Source: Lepidodermella squamata (lineage: Eukaryota; Animalia; Gastrotricha). From it: a stretch of DNA of 64,000 nucleotides. The notes beneath the pieces are model-generated. The model was not told where the DNA came from and did no database searches. It saw only the letters and a program-made list of their open reading frames with translations. Of this stretch, positions 5,355-63,509 are shown in pieces. The translations under genes were made by a program, and so were the position numbers. Numbering within the stretch: position 1 is the first letter of the stretch; each line of letters begins with the position of its first letter. Location: positions 496,001 to 560,000 of the forward strand of contig JBLDXI010000020.1 in NCBI GenBank assembly GCA_047495785.1, written 5' to 3'.

Positions 5355-8300
5355 CGCCGAATTATCATGCTGCTGAGTTTTCTTCTTCGCAGCGCCTACC
5401 AGCAGCGTGAACGCGTCGTTCGAATCTTTTTGGGGCTCCGCAATTTTTCAGATATTCAGATAAAAATCACAGCTAAACCAAACAAGGAAAAATCACTATA
5501 CGCAAAAACAACAAGTACATGAGTTGGGAAAAACAAGCCTGGGGACTTGATTAGTTGATTGCTGGAAAGAAGTCGCTGCCAGTGTTTATTCGCAAGTGTG
5601 GAGAAGTAAACACGTGGTTGGTAATTGGCGACGCGGTATGTTGCGCGCGCGCAAAAAATACACCGATGCGCGGTGCGGAAAAAACGCGCCAACCGGCGCA
5701 ATTTCATACCGCGCATCTCGTAAAGCCGTTGCCGCCTATAATGGGCATGAAAAGACAACAAACAATTGTTGGCCAAGACTCGAATGGCTGCGAAAGAATA
5801 ATAAACACTCTTCACGCGTTTCTGTGCAGGCGCCACGTGTCGGGCGTCCGGCTGCTAATATGCGCAATTTTACGTCATCGAACAGTGAAGCGATCGGTTA
5901 TATACTATCAATACATCCTAACAGGTAATCAAATTCGTCAATGTTGCTATTATTTTACCATCGCGCTCACGGCGGGCGTTACTATCGGTACTGGCGCCGC
6001 TGCGGCGCTGAGCAATTACCCGCGCAACCAGCGCCGTGTCGGGGCAGAAAATACAACAATAAACCGAGATCTTACAAGAACAAATTGCTTCAGTTGTTAT
6101 CACCCGGCGACGCACGCCCGGCATATTAGCCGCTAACATTATTTACGGCAGCGCACGTGTGTTGGCGCCGTTTCCAATAACGAAAGTATTAATTCGCTCT
6201 CGCCGTGGAAGTGTGAAACCCACCAACCTATTATAAGAATATGAGTGGCGCCATTACTTTTTCAGCCTTCTCGACTTTATAATATTGACGCAGGTGCCAA
6301 GATATCAACACTGACGCGTCGACATCCACAACGTAAAGCGGAACTGCGTTCGCTCGGCCTGCCTTGCGGCATTTGCCGGCGCCGCCATCGGCGCAACTAC
6401 GCGCACACGCTCAATCACGGCCACGCGCATTTGCCTCGCTTAACTTCAAGCATCGCTGCCACCACGCCAATAAGACCAGCAATGCTGGCTCAGAATCATT
6501 AACGCGAAAAAAGCGGATTCTAAAAGGCGGTGTCTAACCGCGTCTATTTAATTATAGACAGCGGTGATATTAAACTCATTTTTGGGCCACTTGAACTGGA
6601 GTTCAACCTAAAAAAAAGGAGTTGTCGATTCGTTTTGGAGCCGGATATGATCTTGCTGTAATAAAACTTTGGGAGGCGACACTTGAGTGCGAGGTAATCG
6701 AACTGGACAGTGTTTTAGCGCGCCGCAAAAAACTGCCAGGCCGCGTGTCACTGATGCTTGAATAATCGTATTGACGTGAGTGAATTTGTGCGTATTATAG
6801 TCAAGTTTCAAGAACGAACTACATATAAATTGGATCGTGAAATGAGAACCCCAATGTCCAGATTCAGCATCAGTTATAATAATCAGTGCAGCCGCGTTGT
6901 AAAAATAACAACGCCGGCCGCGAACAAAGCCAGCGCTGTCTGGACAAAAATGTGTGTTCATAGCTTGAAATGGCAATCACGAGAAAACAATCGGCGCATA
7001 GATCACCGATAAAAATAATGTTTTTGTGAAAGAAGCGTCTAATGCCGTTTCAGGCGGAAGAAAATGCGTTTGAGTTGTTTCTTTAATTTAGTTGACACTG
7101 CGCGCCACAGCGCCTCGCCATCCGACTTCACTATAAGGCGCGGGCCAAGTGAAGTGAAAATTAGTTTCAAAGCCGCGATATCGATAAAATGGGCACCGCA
7201 GCACCTATGCGCGCGCGCGGTCTATTGGGCCGAAGGTTCGTGGCATCGATATCGTTTGATAATAACAATAATAGTATTAATAATAGTAATAGAAAGTATT
7301 CTTATTAGAACAAGCTTACTCGATGACCATTTCGATTTGTTTCGATAGCCAGCTCATGACTAGAACAATGTGCACTTGTTTGTATTATTTGCCTAATAAC
7401 ATTTTTGTATACCTACCTTTCGCCGCCAAGCCAGTCATTGTAATCCGTAGTGTGACAGGCATACAAATCTAGATATATTTTAGAAAAACTTTGGGGGTGA
7501 ACGCGATTTTGCGCAGTCGATTTTCGCTTTGGGCGAACAAATTGAAAAACAAACATAGCGGCCGAAAAGGCACTAATCGCGCTATATAGCTTGCAAAATT
7601 TGAGGACACGGTGTGTTTGCCGTCTACGAACGGGCCAAGATGTGCGCGTGCCTCTCCTAAATGCGGACGGATGCTCAGCGTCGTCTTTTTACATGGCTCC
7701 ATTTTTGTAAGAGCTTCCTGTGGTCATTATGCCGGTAAATCACGGTACATAAATTTCGATTTTTGGCGGCTACGTCGCAAATTGATGAGCCTTATTTTGC
7801 CACCAAATTGAAATATACCTACCTACTAGCGACACGACGAAGAAAATTAGGTGCGGTCACCTAGAGGCTTCCAGAAGCTTAGGCCGAGGAAATTCTGGTG
7901 GTTATCAGGGAAAAATATCGCTATTATAGTAGGATAAAACAAAATTCTCAGAATGAAACGTAATAAACGTAATAGCCAAGATAATTGAATGGTGATCTAT
8001 CGGTCGAGTGGGAATTCGGCTAATTTCCGCATCGCGATCAATGGCGATTCCCGGCCCCTACGGAACACCGACCGCTGGCTATTGTCGAAGAATCGCTGGC
8101 GCCGCAAACATATGCACCTAGCGACGCAGTGAATAAACAAAAAACGCTAATCTGACTGATTGCTTTCGAGCTATAGTTTTTGCATGTCCAGGTGATGATA
8201 CACGTCGCTGACGTACCGCATCATTATCGATATTTGTTGACTCTATACAACGACCGAGCAGAGTTTTCCGATAATTAAGTTTAGTGGATATCCCAGAAGA

Positions 8301-54627: not shown

Positions 54628-57600
54628 TTACACCGGTCTTCTCTCTGACTTCAGTTTCACAAATTCCTTGGCAACATCGTCGTTCGAGCGCTGTGACAAA
54701 ATCCGCAAAATGGTGTAGCCAGTATCATCAAGCTTGATGGTGCCCGCCAGCGGCAACCATGTCTGCAAAGTCCCTTGATGAATGTTGGCGAGATCTGTTA
54801 ACTTAATAACGGAGATGCCAATAATCTTATCGTCTGTGCCAAAACAATAATCCTTCACTGAATAGTGAAGTTCGTAATCGCCGATTTCGCCCTCATTTCC
54901 GATCATGCTGAAATTAAATGATATGCGGATGAGCCTAAAATAGCATTTCAAGAAAAAATTACAATTGATAGCTTTCGTTGAAAACAGGAGCAAGAGTGCC
55001 GGTCTTCGACTTGGTGTCCCATTTTCTCTTTCTTTGGGCTAAACTAGGACCAACCAGAGTGACACTCACGAAAGGCCGCGCCGAACTTGACCACCGAAGA
55101 TTGTTACACGCAACCACTGTATTGAAGAAACAGTGGAAACCACGATTTCCAAATAGTAGAACAAAACACAAACCTTTGACGTTAACTTTGTGCTCGCCTG
55201 TTCCGGGATGCGTGAACAGGTCAATTTGAATATGCAAGTCGCCAGCAGATTCAGAAGCTGCGCTTGCATCCTGCTTCTGTTGCGTCTGGACAAACGTTTT
55301 GATAAGGGTATCCGTTGTATGAGTGTACAATGAAAGCGCGTATTGAAGTGATTTCAACTGCGGACTCTTTTCTAGATAAGGCATTTTCAAGCCCTGCCCA
55401 TCAGCGTGGAAGTAGCCCTTGATTGTTTCGAGGGCGGCCTGGATCACGGCGCACTGACGAGCAGAAAGGCTTCGCTCGCTATCCCGAGAAATATCCTGGA
55501 AATTGAGAATCAAGTTCAATAAAGTTCAAAAATGCCATAAAAATGGTTATCCATCGCCAAGAAAGGCATGCAACAAACCTGGATGATGGAAACGACGTTA
55601 AGGTTGCCTGCTTGCTTTTGCACTTTGTTAAAAAGCAGACTAGAGACGTCTTTAACTTTGTCTTTCGCAGAATCCGTCCCGAGAGTTGCGAGAGAAAGCT
55701 GTTTGTTAGAATAAGAAGCGTTAGTCTAGGTAAGCGATGTTAAAAATGTTAGATTTTAAGCCCCAATAAACCATTCGTTAGTCGAAATGATCTAAAAATT
55801 ATCACCTGCTCATTAGACCCAAAAAATGGGAATCCCTTCAGAAACTACACGGGGACATGAGCTCCATTTCGAAAGGCTAATAGGCTAGCATACCTTTTTG
55901 GAGTCTTGCGGTGGTAAAACTATCGTTTTCTCGAGGTTGGTCAGCGTGACTATCCACAGCTCTTTGAGCATGCGCTTGAGGATAGTTTTGTCGCAGTTGT
56001 CAGCGTACACCGAAATGCAGTTCTCAAGGTACTCCATCAAAGGCTGCACGATCAAATCGCTCTCTTGGTGTATCTGATCGATAACCGATGGCTGCGTTAG
56101 AGGCTGGTTCGGCTGGTTGCCCTTGACTTTCTGCTGGAGTAGCTTCGACATTTCGACGATTTGCATTTGAATCTGCGGCGACAGGCCCTCGGCGCACATT
56201 GTACACAACCGGTCGAGATAGCTGTTCAGTTTTTCTTGTAACTCGTTCAGCACCTCCGCTGTATTCTTGTCCAAATCTTTGCCACCCATCAGCTCAAACA
56301 ATTTTTCGAGATTCACGCGAGTTTGCTGCATGTTATTCAGCAGGATGCAGGTCTAAAACGGTTGCAAGAAATATTAAATCGATATCAAACAAAAATAGAT
56401 ATACTCACCGTTTTTTGATCTTGAATTGAATTGAAGAAGTCGTTTTCGATGAAATCGCCGTAAGATATTAGCACCTTTTCGATAGTCTTGGCGAAGCGGG
56501 CCATGTACACGTTTTTGATAGAAGGATCAGGACACTCGAGTTTTTTGATAACATCATGACACTGGGTAAGTTGGCTGAACATGTCAACGACTGAATTCGA
56601 GAAGTTGGTCTGTTCGGATGTTTTTGGAAACTGAAAGATGAAAAATTACAGTTAGCTGACGAGTGGCTAAAATGCAAAGAATAAAAATACCCCATCACGC
56701 TTATCGCGCTCGTACGCCGATTTGACACAGTCCAAAGAAACTTCGTCGTTGTCGTTCAGCCAGATCATGACGAATGCCTCGAACCAACGCGGATATTCGG
56801 CAGCTTTTGATTTCATCTCGGGTAAAACGGCCACGTATTTCGAGTAGAGCCATTTGATTTTGAAGTGAAGGTTCATGTACTCGGACGACTTGCATTTGTT
56901 ACGAGATCTTTCGTGCTCGAGAAGCGCCCCCTCCAGATCATCAGCCAACTGCTGCCACAAAATCAGAGCGCTAATATCTCCAACTTTAACACTCGGAAAT
57001 CTGTTGAAGAATTACAATTTAGATAATTCAATTCAAATTAATGGCAATAAGCATACTGATTGAGCACTGGGCCATAAGTGTTTCGGTCCTCTTCGATCAC
57101 TGAAACTATCAACGCGATGAGCTTATGCCAGAAGTCGAGGTTTTTGAGAACTGGGCCGCGATCGCCGTCCTCCTGTGTTTCGGCTGGTTGAGCCTTGTTC
57201 TCGTCCGCTCCTTCGAACTCCTTTTGATACAGCTCGTAGCAGTGATCGTACAGGAATTGATACGTTCGTCGCATATTCGCTTTTATGCACTCTTCGACGA
57301 CCGCCGATGCCTTTGGAGGTGACACTAGTCCTTGCACCTGAAAAATTATGATGAAAATGTATTAATTGTCATAATAGATGATGCAAAAAATGCCGGTGCT
57401 AATAACCTCTAATTCGTCAGTACTAGACGATACAGTGCACCCTAAAGAGTTCTCGATCTTAACGACCCTCTCGTCGAGGCGCTTGAACGCGTTTTCTAAT
57501 CTTTGCAGGTAGGATTCAAATGAGTTGATCAATTGGAACAACACCACAAGGTTGTCCACAGCTGAATTCAGCTGCTGACTCGTCGCAATCGATGCAGCGC

Positions 57601-60600
57601 AACTGTGATCAGACTCGTAAATTTCCGAAATTTTACTGCCGGAAGGCGGCATATCAGGGCTGGTTTTCAAAGGGGTAACTGAAGGCACACTGTGAATTAT
57701 TGATAACCGCCGACGTCTGACTGAATCCACTGCCAGTTGACGAGTTCGAGATGATCGAGAAGTGACAGAGCTGATACTAGGTCGGCGGCTGACGGAGCCT
57801 CTAACGCTGCCGTTTGGGGGCTGGCCGGCCAACGCAGTTGGAATGTTCATAAGGCCGTGTAAATTGTGCATAAGCACGGCCACGGTAGACATTGTTTATG
57901 AGTAATAAAACGACAGCGTATAATATCGCCAGGAAACTTCAGTATTATCGATTTCAGAAAGCGAAAATGCGCACTGTAAAATCGCGTTTAATGAAATGGA
58001 AACTTCTCAACGATTCGCGTCTATTTCGAATCGATGGCGACTAATTATCGAAAGTTGCCCGAGTCATGATATAGGCAAACGAGCGCGGGTAAGAGGATTC
58101 ATTTTTTTTACTAAGCTGCACCAACAAAAAAAACAGGCACTAATACCCAATATTCTCGCCAAGATTATGTCTTGTGCGCTCAGGCAACGTCAGTGTAGTT
58201 GGGTGTAGTAATAATGTTAGCATTAATTACGCGAAAAAACGATGAGCTTACTTTCATACGGAAGAAGTTTATCGACGTGAGTAAGTCGACACATGCCTGC
58301 AGATCGCGAAGCCTCAGCGGTTCAGAGGCAGGGAAGTTATTCTACATGACGAGAAAAAAACACGTACTTATTCAACATGTATCTGCGCGGCGTAAACGCT
58401 AATAAGCACTCACCCGATAATCGATGAGCTCGAGGCGAATCGAGTTGTGCAACTGATCGAGAAGTTTCGTAAACTTTTCTTTCTAAAATAGAAAAATCGA
58501 GTAAGAAAGCTGTTGCTGCTGACCTTAAGGCGATCTTACCCGGAAATTTGACGCGTTAAATCGATTCTGGCTGCTATTGCCAGTGCCAGAGGAAGATAGC
58601 GAGCTTCCCGCAGCGGAAGCGCTGTGTGCATAATGAACATTGATGTGGGCGAGAAGATCACTAAGCAGCGGTGGAACCGAAGGATTCAGCAGTTTAGTTG
58701 CAAGGCATGAAAAATGCGTCATCGCCTGTATAAAACAACCTCGCGTTTCGCATTCAATTGGTTAATAATTACTACATACCATGTATATCCGATCTATGCC
58801 GTAACGTTGAGCAAATTCCTCGACAATCTCCTGCACCTGAGGCTCGAAATAACGTTCCCATGCATCGCTAGAGTCGCCGGGCGGTATCTATTGCGGAACA
58901 GATCGAGTCATAAATCGATCGGATTTATTGTCTTCGCTATGGTAACTTACGTAAGACGGAGGTGAGTTTGGCTGGTCGTAAATGTAATGGAAGAAGTTTT
59001 CATGAAGGCAGGTGTACTGGTCAAAATAGGGCGCGACTTTCTCCTCTCCTTTGATTTCGATACTGATCTGAAGGCGAATGGCACCGGAAACCATGGAGCG
59101 ATCAGTTCTCTTTTCTAAAAAAATTAAAAAATAAGAATAAGCGTTACCTCGATAAAAAGCGATCAATGTAAAGCATAGAGGTAACCCGCAGAAAACCCTT
59201 GCTTATTACTAGGCCCCAAAACCGTTTTCATGGCATTCGCAATTAATTTATGTTGTACCAAGCGGATAGCACAGGCAAGAATCCCCGCTCAGTTGGCGCA
59301 TTTGTAATACTGTTTGACCCAAAAAATCGTCCTTTTCTTTCGTCAAGAAGTACATGAACTTGGAGCAAATGTCGCGATCTTCATCCCTAAACGCAGTGAA
59401 ATCGAGGTTCAACTTCCAAGTAATCGATCAAATTGTCAATTCTAATTTCTATCTAGGGTAATACCGTGGGGGTGGGGGTTCGATAAGTTAAATTACCTAA
59501 ATTGCACCAAATATCAGAATCGCCGCACAGTTTGGAGACGTCAATAATGTATTGACCGAGAAAATCGTCGGACTCGCGAGTGAACTTTTGTCGAAGCCGA
59601 GACTTGAAGTCGTCATCCTCGTCCCTATAAATCGATGATTCATGGTTGGGTAATTTTGTAAGGGGACCGAGACGATGGATAGCTATACTACAACATTCTA
59701 GAATATCAACCTACCAAACTCGTATCTTGATGCGCTCTGAGATGTTGTGGCATTCACTAGAAAGCACAGATTTAATGAATATTTAAGCAGCGCGGTAAAA
59801 AGCTCACAAGAAAAACTTTTCGTTCCACTCTGGATTGAGGGTTTTGAACTTGGTTTTTGTTCGCCTCTTCGTTCTACCCAGCTGTATGGTGACGTAAGGA
59901 TCACTAGTTCCCGTTGCATCTTTACCCATGAGGCCTTGAGCGGACACAACTGAAAAAATTGATTGTGTTAAATTCGGCGGAAAATTATCAAATAAACCAT
60001 CACAACATAGCAAAGCAACTGCAACTAAACGATATATGACAATACATGCACCCACGAGGAGGCGTAAATCAACAAAGGAAACGGAAAAAACTGTAAAATT
60101 GCTGCAAATCGCTAGGGTGTTTTAGTGAAGCAGCTATAATGTAACATTAGGTAATCGAAAAGCAACCAGGTAAAATTGGAAACAAGAACCAAAAGGGAAA
60201 AGTTCAAACTAAAAAGCGGCAGGATATTTGCAGCAAAGCATTGCATCGATACAAAAGCTTGTGGCGATTTAATAATACCTGTGACACTAATGTTAGCCGA
60301 CCATTTCGACGCCCCGTCCAGCATGGCCTGCTTGGACTGATCAATGGCCTGCTGGTGAACTTTTGGTTCGACTTTGAAAATTTTGCTAAACAACCAAATC
60401 CATCAAAGAAAAACAAGGGATTACACAAAGTTGAAACCAGCTAAATTGTCGGTTTTTGAAGTACTTAACGGGGTCAACTCAGACGATTCATTTCGAAATT
60501 CAAATAATAATGGTAAAGATACGAGATGTACGCCCTCCCGTCGTCAACTACCGAAGTGCTTTATGACTATTATCAAGTGCTGATCGTACTCGAGTTATAA

Positions 60601-63509
60601 TGTTAAGACACAAGCTACCCCATTGAACATCAGTACGACAGAGTAATCTTCTCGAAAGACAAGTGCACGATTGACAAACTTGTGATGGTAACATCCGCCG
60701 ACCACTTAGTGGCCAGTATAGTCTGCTCAGTTTCTTTCATGAATAGCTTATGAATTTTGTTATCAATGCAGAATACGCGCCTGTGTAGTCAACATGACAA
60801 ATTTCGGTAAGTAGTTTTCAAAATTTGGAAAAGAGATGCAAACATTGTAGTAAATTAACCCAATTTTCTCCGCTAACGGGATTTTTCGGGCCGATTCTCT
60901 CTAAATTGAAACAAAAATAACGTACCTGACGAGGTCAAACGTTTCTTTCTTCTCGACTTCACGCTTTTTCATCAGGTCCGTAATAATGTTCATGAAAACT
61001 TGAGCTCTGTCGTGCGCACCCTGGCGAGCACTCTTTTCAGCAGCGCCTATTCGCGGAAAACAGATTAATTTCACGGAAATTTAGTTCAAATGTTGACAAA
61101 CGTTGCAAACAATCGGCATTCATTAAGGCTTTGCATCTATCGTGGCATTTGACGCCGCACTGGGTACATCGAAGGCCCTGGCGAGCAAGACCCCACAAGA
61201 GACCTTCACATTCAAAGCAGTAGGTAGGGTGTTTGGCACTGAAGATTTCGAATTTGTGATCGCCGCTCGTTTTCGACATTGGATATAACAGCGCCTGCAG
61301 CGTCTTCTTGTAGACATGCATTTTCTAAGAATAGAAAATTCAGCTATTCGACGAATAACTGCAATCAATTAATCACTCACAAGTTCTTCATCATTAAGTG
61401 CCCGACTTGTGATGACAGCAGTTTGTGCTTCTGCTTTGCGCTTGTTGGCGGCGACCGTCTGAAAAAATAGGCGCATCGCACTTCAAATGACTGACTAGAA
61501 ATAACATTTCCCAAGGCAAAATGAAGCAAACAGAAAATTGAGATTTCAAAGTAAAAGCAAGGTTAGTTATGCAGTCGGATGCAGGAATTGATAAAAAAAT
61601 AAAAACGAAAGCCGGCATCGGCCAACTTTTGATCAATTAGTTAGGGTGTAAATAGCAGGAGTATTGATATAAAAAATGAAATCGCAACACAGCAAAAAGG
61701 ATTCAAACAAAAATTCGACAAAACTGTCATCTCTCTATGTTACAAGACTCTCACCTTCATCACCTATATAACACCAAATTAGTAGCATAAGAAATATGTT
61801 AGTATCAGAATGTAATTGTCTTCCAATTCAAAAATTAACTACTCGAAAACAACTGAAAACAGCAGCAGTTTCAAATCAATGAATAGAAATCTGACACTCA
61901 AAAAAATCGCTGTTGGTCACTCTTTTCTTTACAAACATACAGATATTGTGGAAACGACGTCAGCTAATGTCTTGCGTTGCTTTTGAGAATTGAAAATAAC
62001 GTCAATAAAAACGGGGTGAAAATGAGCGACCCAGCAAACAAGATGTTCGCTGATACGCGATCTGACTAGTAGAGTGTACTATCAACAAGAAGTGTTGATT
62101 CACACGAAATGATACGACTAATGTTACAATATTGATTCAAGGCTCATCAACTTACAAGCTCGCTAACGTGAGACATCTTCGCTAGCCTTGGCTTCAGATC
62201 GGAAGAAGTGTTAATTTGGTTGTAGAAATCGGTGCGGCCCCTGCAATTGTTATCATTGAAAGCGTCAAGATAAAAGCAAATAAGAGATAACATCATTTGG
62301 TTAATAGGGAAATAGTTTTAGTACCAATGGATATCGAGATTAATGTGTTATTTTGGCAGGCATCCTTTACCCCGAAATAAGCCAAGTTAGTATTTAGCGC
62401 TAGCAATGGCAAGCCTTCTGAAAATTCAAATTATTTTTACTTCATCCCCTCGAAAGATCACGGATGCCCGGCGTGGTTTCAGCTTAACCATATCAACATC
62501 CACGTCCATATTGAAATTTTTAGTTACGTCACCATCCGCGGTCATTTTCTGGTTTTTATAACGCCTGAAATTGAAAGCATTAGCAAGTTAATAACCGCCA
62601 GCCATGTAATGGGAAGGGAATAAATGCAGGGTAAACCCAGGAAACATGGAAAATACTTATCACATACCTGTCGCCGCCACCTGGCATGTCTGACATCGTA
62701 TCGGTCTCCTCGCTGAGCAGATTGTCCTGTAAACGAGATTGAAGCAGCTTAAACATGTTGTTTCGCACGGTGTTAACAGAAAAATGAGGCAGCAATGAAA
62801 TAATACTACAATAAACTCGCTCCCCCTCACTCCAGGTGCAAGTTGCCAACAACTTGCTAAAACAAACAAGTATTCATCATCTCTCAAGCTCTGCATCTAT
62901 TATTGCCCACCTTAACGCGAACGTGTTGGCCATGCGGCCCTCTCTTTCTTGTCAAAAGCCGCTGTGATATGAAATATATGCTAATTTTTTCAGCGACAAG
63001 TCTTGCATAAAACTGGATGTTTCACGCTGACCAAGCGTAAAATCGCAACTCACGAGTATAGTACGCCTCGGTAGCAGGCTAGCACAGGCTGAACATTCGC
63101 AAATGACTCCGCAAGTCATTCGACGCTTGCTCTGCTGGCGAATAGCCGATACGCTGTTATCACACACGTTTCGAGGGCGTAGAACAGATGAGTATTTCCA
63201 GGTCATGTTCGCGCTTGGACCGCTGGATAAATCGACTTCTTTGCCCGTAGATGGGTCGATTGGAATCAGCGTGTCACCGCCACGTCGACCAGAAGAAAAA
63301 TAGGCGAATAATTTGGGCGAATCGGGCGATAAAGAGCCTGAACTGTGCGATGGGGCAGGGCTCGGCGGCTGGTCGAGAATCTCTTGTACCATTTTCAGTT
63401 CCTCCTCCTCCTCCTGCGTGCAGCTAACAGCCGCATCGGTTGGCGCCGAGGCAAATGCAGAACTCATCCTCTTCTTGACTGCTTGAGCAAGATACGAAAC
63501 AATACTCAT
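54628..63509 (-). CDS. unc-13: UNC-13/Munc13 synaptic vesicle priming protein (C1-C2B-MUN-C2C); further 5' exons may lie beyond the window
   Basis: [22 protein letters not shown]1 ([24 protein letters not shown]), C2B ([18 protein letters not shown]), [18 protein letters not shown] ([29 protein letters not shown]), C2C ([18 protein letters not shown]) and terminal [23 protein letters not shown]. More than 25 exons join in frame. Confidence 0.97.
57407..57892 (-). CDS. Putative internal alternative first coding exon of unc-13
   Basis: ATG-initiated 162-codon segment inside the 914-nt intron 57338-58251. Donor GAG|gttatt at 57406 is phase 0 and a 69-nt intron joins it in frame to the VQGLVSPP exon. 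Confidence 0.6.

Follow-up and report, generated by a model that had tools for sequence, protein, structure and literature searches.

An open reading frame (ORF) inside an intron of the unc-13 gene of the gastrotrich Lepidodermella squamata raises the question of whether this gene, which functions in synaptic vesicle priming, produces a natural Unc13 isoform without the C1 and C2B domains; until now, engineered deletions have been the means of studying what these domains do. The gene lies in a 64,000-nucleotide (nt) stretch of DNA (contig JBLDXI010000020.1, positions 496,001–560,000; the window), which contains the C-terminal two-thirds of unc-13/Munc13, complete, on the minus strand; positions below are those of the window unless a contig of another animal is named. 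The original prediction, made from the letters of the window, placed an isoform-specific first exon within 58251–57338, and these coordinates are exactly one intron (minus strand, 914 nt), which we call the host intron. Our analysis favors, with a probability of roughly three in four, a lineage-specific alternative first coding exon of unc-13 that is spliced from 57407 to 57337 and kept by selection. A short Unc13 without C1 and C2B is, judging from the sequence, very probably produced from this exon. We infer transcription and the 57407–57337 junction themselves, the junction because its donor, phase, and acceptor are conserved.

The ATG (57892–57890) lies inside the host intron on the strand of the gene and is preceded, two codons upstream, by an in-frame TAA (57898–57896). 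The open frame from this ATG encodes 176 residues and ends at its own TAA (57364–57362). The distance from the ATG to a donor, GAG/GTTATT (the slash marks the exon boundary; last exon base 57407), is 486 nt or 162 codons, and the shared acceptor TTTTCAG/G (first exon base 57337) opens the receiving exon, which is read in phase 0. Direct reading of the minus strand confirmed the predicted same-strand ATG frame with an in-frame stop just upstream, and the donor, acceptor, and phase of the predicted in-phase splice to 57337 are all present in the sequence. The host intron and its flanks comprise the following features:

58252–58341, minus strand: last canonical exon before the host intron, ending in ...FFRMK in phase 0 and skipped by the predicted short isoform
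57893–58251, minus strand: upstream part of the host intron, 359 nt, presumed to hold a promoter or a trans-splice acceptor and the 5' untranslated region
57407–57892, minus strand: predicted alternative first coding exon, spanning 162 codons between the ATG and the GAG/GT donor
57338–57406, minus strand: predicted intron after the alternative exon, 69 nt, GT...TTTTCAG, holding a 14-codon tail of the ORF and its own stop
57057–57337, minus strand: shared receiving exon, which matches positions 2–80 of the Pfam MUN model (E = 8.5e-22)

The canonical exon ends with ...ATGAAA at 58252, and the host intron opens with GTAAGC at 58251. The 69-nt length is typical of the short introns of this genome, and the ORF is single-copy in the 121-megabase (Mb) assembly (151 contigs). 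One alternative is that the ORF is a chance open frame, or a conserved noncoding element such as an enhancer. An estimate from stop-codon frequency gives one or two open segments of this length in 64 kb, and an open segment of at least 177 codons arose in only 7 of 2,000 dinucleotide shuffles of the intron; by itself, comparison aside, the intronic ORF is only moderately unusual.

Sequence searches, which were run exon by exon, supplied the comparison. A word search revealed one homologue, a 177-residue ORF with 41% protein identity, on metagenome contigs of a related animal (hereafter the relative). In the relative, an upstream unc-13 exon ending in ...FFRMK is followed by an intron, inside which an ATG, preceded by an in-frame stop at a distance of 13 codons, opens an exon of 168 codons. 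This exon ends at a GAG/GTTACT donor in phase 0, and an 88-nt intron with a TTTTCAG/G acceptor leads to the shared exon, where 26 of 27 residues are identical. The whole unc-13 gene is collinear between the window and the longer contigs of the relative. Conservation in relatives was a check named beforehand, and it succeeded: the relative has the exon in the corresponding intron, and its donor position, phase, and acceptor agree with those of the window.

Synonymous sites are saturated between the two species, with proportions of synonymous differences (pS) of 0.76–0.89 in the flanking canonical exons and 0.78 in the new exon; against the latter value, the proportion of nonsynonymous differences (pN) in the new exon is 0.43. 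The canonical exon before the host intron has 94% protein identity to its counterpart, and its donor reads AAA/GTAAGC in the window and AAG/GTCTGT in the relative. DNA local alignment scores reach z = 20 for the new exon and z = 28 for canonical exons, and the intron sequence on either side of the new exon is unalignable (z = −1.4 for the upstream part and z = −0.1 for the 69-nt versus the 88-nt intron). Conservation begins at the ATG, and the gaps between the exons of the two species are all whole codons.

Single-nucleotide polymorphisms (SNPs) were compared among six contigs of the relative, which came from different samples. The exon carries 9 SNPs, 8 of which are synonymous and at third positions and 1 of which is a Ser/Asn change, and no insertions or deletions; by binomial arithmetic, an unconstrained sequence would show at least 8 of 9 SNPs at third positions with p of about 1e-3. 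In the four long contigs, the variable sites of the exon are synonymous third positions in 7 of 7 cases, and those of the canonical exons are synonymous in 14 of 14. Protein-level conservation despite saturated synonymous divergence, whole-codon gaps, and this third-position bias all speak against a chance frame or a noncoding element, which we regard as extremely improbable. On this comparison, the intronic ORF is a coding exon under purifying selection, conserved from the ATG to the donor.

A second alternative accepts the coding frame and assigns it to an independent nested gene: translation would finish at the stop of the ORF (57362), and the product would be a coiled-coil protein of 176 residues with no link to unc-13. 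The original prediction had named this outcome as contradicting it. The ORF does have its own ATG and stop, and the two ORFs are nearly equal in length. However, conservation stops at the donor: the tails past it are 14 and 9 codons long in the two species and cannot be aligned, and the 88 nt after the relative's donor contain 7 SNPs, 3 of which lie in the ORF tail and alter two tail residues, in contrast to the almost entirely synonymous SNPs of the exon. Coding constraint thus stops at the GT, as expected of a splice donor and not of a nested gene whose frame continues to the stop codon. In addition, the stop lies only 24 nt before the shared unc-13 exon, no AATAAA signal accompanies it in either species, and the donor position, phase 0, and a short intron are all conserved. 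A nested gene is accordingly disfavored, and we consider it very unlikely.

The preferred reading, an alternative first exon of unc-13, depends on the domain map of the host gene. Pfam analysis revealed C1 (C1_1, 61324–61040, E = 6e-15) followed by C2B (C2, 59959–59807, E = 5e-16), and then MUN followed by a C-terminal C2C, the order of domains of Unc13/Munc13. Positions 2–473 of the MUN model are spread over the exons from 57337 to about 54962, after which C2C follows, the last exon aligning to rat Munc13-1 C2C at E = 2.5e-24. Two further features bound the predicted isoform:

59807–61324, minus strand: exons coding for C1 and C2B, upstream of the host intron and absent from the predicted short isoform
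54631–57000, minus strand: remaining shared exons, with the rest of MUN (Pfam positions 83–473) and the C2 match of C2C up to the stop, collinear with the relative

In the proposed sequence of events, a transcript would start inside the host intron, from its own promoter or by trans-splicing; translation would begin at the ATG at 57892; and the donor at 57407 would be spliced to the shared acceptor at 57337. The product would comprise, in order, a 26-residue motif, a basic Ser-rich disordered stretch, a 45-residue heptad helix, and most of MUN with C2C, with a size of roughly 880 residues (162 new and about 716 shared, from the sum of conserved exon blocks). Because its start lies downstream of the exons of both domains, the product would lack C1 and C2B, as originally predicted; both Pfam domains map upstream of the start exon. 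The product would also lack C2A, the calmodulin site, and most of MUN subdomain A.

The last of these losses follows from where the exon joins MUN. The original prediction put the join at the start of the MUN region, which holds for the Pfam model, since the model begins (position 2) at residue 13 of the receiving exon, but not for the structure: in the C1C2BMUN crystal, structural MUN starts at residue 828, and subdomain A consists of seven helices (PMC5344669). The receiving exon matches rat Munc13-1 chains in the Protein Data Bank (PDB) at E = 8e-26 and aligns at position 54–56 of the MUN crystal chains 6A30 and 4Y21. Residue 933 is the first of the MUN fragment used by Yang et al. (PMC5344669), which places the join at about residue 980–990 of rat Munc13-1; the shared part would run from there to the end. 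Structural MUN begins about 150 residues before the join, and the isoform would therefore have a truncated subdomain A and not an intact MUN; the roughly 150 residues lost would include the C2B–MUN interface around N940.

The predicted exon product is divided into an N-terminal motif, a basic Ser-rich stretch, and a heptad helix. Its two best conserved elements are as follows:

57815–57892, minus strand: conserved N-terminal motif, residues 1–26, 16 of 26 identical between species
57443–57580, minus strand: conserved amphipathic heptad helix, residues 105–150, with 25 of 27 residues identical in the core (110–136)

The first 26 residues and the helix core are the best conserved parts, and they are therefore the likeliest functional elements. 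Residues 115–150, read from the translation, form an unbroken 3-4-3-4 heptad with 11 hydrophobic positions. AlphaFold2 predicted a confident helix at residues 105–149 (predicted local distance difference test score of about 90), a low-confidence helix at residues 3–15, and disorder elsewhere, including the basic Ser-rich stretch. The Ser/Arg motifs (residues 36–39 and 59–64) and the coiled-coil heptad pattern of the original prediction were found where claimed. Its suggestion of kinase regulation fared less well: in the relative, Ala replaces the Ser of the RRRRLS motif, and conservation is limited to the basic, Ser-rich make-up and a single RRxS-type site that shifts in position. Kinase control is weakly supported. 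As for the function of the new helix, we can only guess that it would dimerize, target the protein, or cap the helical bundle opened by the missing subdomain-A helices.

Two candidate relationships were rejected. Origin of the new helix by duplication of the MUN helices that it replaces (exons 58482–58414 and 58341–58252) gave local alignments no better than shuffles (p = 0.2–0.8). Kinship with dynactin subunit 2 (E = 0.057) or BLOC1S2 (BLOC1_2, 17 bits against a cut-off of 33) was suggested by weak matches, both of which vanished when the relative's exon and a two-sequence profile were used; these are thus chance coiled-coil matches.

Several observations weigh against an alternative first exon that feeds into Unc13: (i) the donor GTTATT, with T at +3, is weaker than most donors of the gene; (ii) upstream of the ATG, the two species share no promoter motif that is conserved above shuffles, and there is no acceptor 11–12 nt before the ATG; (iii) a word search found no transcript-derived fragment across the 57407–57337 junction, and no other record contains the exact ORF; (iv) only two species carry the exon among the 1.84 billion representative proteins and the Joint Genome Institute (JGI) metagenomes searched; and (v) with most of subdomain A missing, MUN may have poor folding or activity, and the authors of the crystal structure report instability of fragments without neighboring interfaces (PMC5344669).

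The suboptimal donor (GTT) also lends some weight to a third alternative, in which a selected coding exon is used otherwise, through intron retention, other splicing, or a separate peptide without downstream Unc13. Against such a use, the phase-0 fit to the shared exon is kept in both species despite differing intron lengths and sequences, and no other in-phase donor is common to both species; we consider it unlikely. Donors with a pyrimidine at +3 (GTTTGT, GTTGAT, and GTCTGT) are used by constitutive unc-13 introns and are fairly common in both species; such sites lie at 60678 and 55578 (minus strand) in the window and at 6333, 7012, 9345, and 9625 on the relative's contig L004. With regard to the transcript start, the nearest plausible acceptor is a candidate TTTTACAG acceptor at about 57974, 81 nt from the start codon with no ATG in between. 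The nematode SL1 leader was not found in the 121-Mb genome, and a bacterial-type promoter scan was set aside as not meaningful for an animal gene.

As for its distribution, an HMMER profile of the exon product identified this N-terminus only in the relative itself among the 1.84 billion representatives, with the caveat that the cluster of a canonical Unc13 could conceal an isoform that has about 80% of its length in common with it. Two scans of JGI metagenomes and the ESM Atlas yielded no further homologue. The exon thus appears, as far as can be seen in these collections, to be restricted to one small lineage.

A product without C1 and C2B would not sense diacylglycerol or Ca2+/phosphatidylinositol 4,5-bisphosphate (PIP2) through these domains. 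We infer by analogy what the lack of these binding modules would do to priming activity. C. elegans UNC-13 minus X, C1, and C2B is hyperactive, but it requires C2A and the linkers (PMC6779330), and the C1-C2B region is proposed to bridge the vesicle and plasma membranes (PMC6407922). With these precedents, the isoform could be freed from inhibition, have little activity, or be directed elsewhere by its new N-terminus. Tentatively, and with more doubt than confidence, we suggest that the coiled-coil N-terminus might dimerize or target a partial MUN-C2C core able to prime vesicles without control by diacylglycerol, Ca2+/PIP2, RIM, or calmodulin. If so, the isoform would be a natural, selection-tested counterpart of engineered hyperactive or minimal constructs, and it might serve another cell type or secretory pathway than the canonical isoforms.

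A natural, selected isoform without C1-C2B and part of subdomain A would reveal the parts of Unc13 that evolution can do without, and it could be put directly into unc-13 mutants of worm or mouse as a rescue construct. The motif and the coiled coil would together constitute a new N-terminal module whose binding partner could be sought. The case also illustrates that, where RNA data do not exist, an exon can be validated against metagenome contigs from relatives that have not been sequenced.

Other features of the gene were observed outside the host intron. Two tandem pairs of similar exons occur on the minus strand, one in the C1-C2B linker (60782–60678 and 60387–60271) and the other at the C2B calcium-binding loop (59629–59495 and 59394–59257). 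Both pairs are also present in the relative's unc-13, and the members of each are probably mutually exclusive. In the second C2B-loop variant, the acidic DEDDD run becomes DEDRD (DEDGD in the relative), and the DEDRD form may alter Ca2+ binding. A further exon (63392–63048, minus strand) has a Met start in both species and is only 37% identical between them, a conservation similar to that of the intronic exon; this exon, too, is probably a first coding exon specific to one unc-13 isoform. Three short introns (~57056–57001, 56408–56353, and ~55150, minus strand), one of which is in-frame, stop-free, and about 57 nt long, are absent at the same positions in the relative (contig L004), and introns have thus been gained or lost between the two animals. 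The same genome contains a second MUN-domain gene (G000:C54:4053636-4055384), with a Pfam MUN score of up to 119 bits. In the relative, an opposite-strand ligand-gated ion channel gene and a LIM-homeobox gene come after unc-13 (L004 13926-19832).

As a rule, Unc13 diversity comes from alternative starts within introns, each with a unique N-terminus. In C. elegans UNC-13S, the promoter lies within an intron and the unique region is a single exon (PMC3743133), and Aplysia unc13 has four start-site variants (PMC9282427). PMC9282427 states that C1-C2B-MUN-C2C is common to all bilaterian neuronal isoforms of Unc13. In Drosophila, a tag inserted ahead of every annotated Unc13 domain is spliced into all annotated transcripts (PMC9797049). 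Neither full-text literature searches nor PMC9282427, PMC3743133, and PMC9797049 gave a natural Unc13 isoform lacking C1-C2B, which agrees with the statement in the original prediction that none was known to have been described.

The present exon shares one feature of the alternative-promoter isoforms, a unique, selected, intronic first exon, and departs from them in another, a retained C1-C2B-MUN-C2C. Like UNC-13S (the MR isoform), it has an intronic start and a unique, poorly conserved N-terminus that would be spliced to the shared C-terminal part (PMC3743133, PMC9282427), and the same analogy extends to bMunc13-2, Munc13-3, Drosophila Unc13B, and the Aplysia variants. Unlike these isoforms, which join upstream of C1 and keep C1-C2B-MUN-C2C, it joins downstream of C2B and inside MUN subdomain A, and its N-terminal sequence matches none of theirs.

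In lacking the C1-C2B module, the predicted product resembles C. elegans sUNC-13, from which X, C1, and C2B are deleted, and MUN-C2C fragments; in worms, removal of the inhibitory domains leads to hyperactivity and a higher release probability (PMC6779330). By contrast, these are laboratory constructs, and sUNC-13 keeps the full MUN as well as C2A and linkers without which it is not active, whereas the exon would provide another N-terminus and a partial MUN. As a putative MUN priming factor without diacylglycerol control, the predicted product is also comparable to Munc13-4 and BAIAP3, which have a C2-MUN-C2 arrangement and no C1. However, Munc13-4 and BAIAP3 are encoded by genes of their own that diverged anciently, and they carry a C2 domain at the N-terminus (PMC9282427, PMC3328385), whereas the product predicted here would come from the neuronal-type unc-13 gene itself, with a coiled coil in place of that C2.

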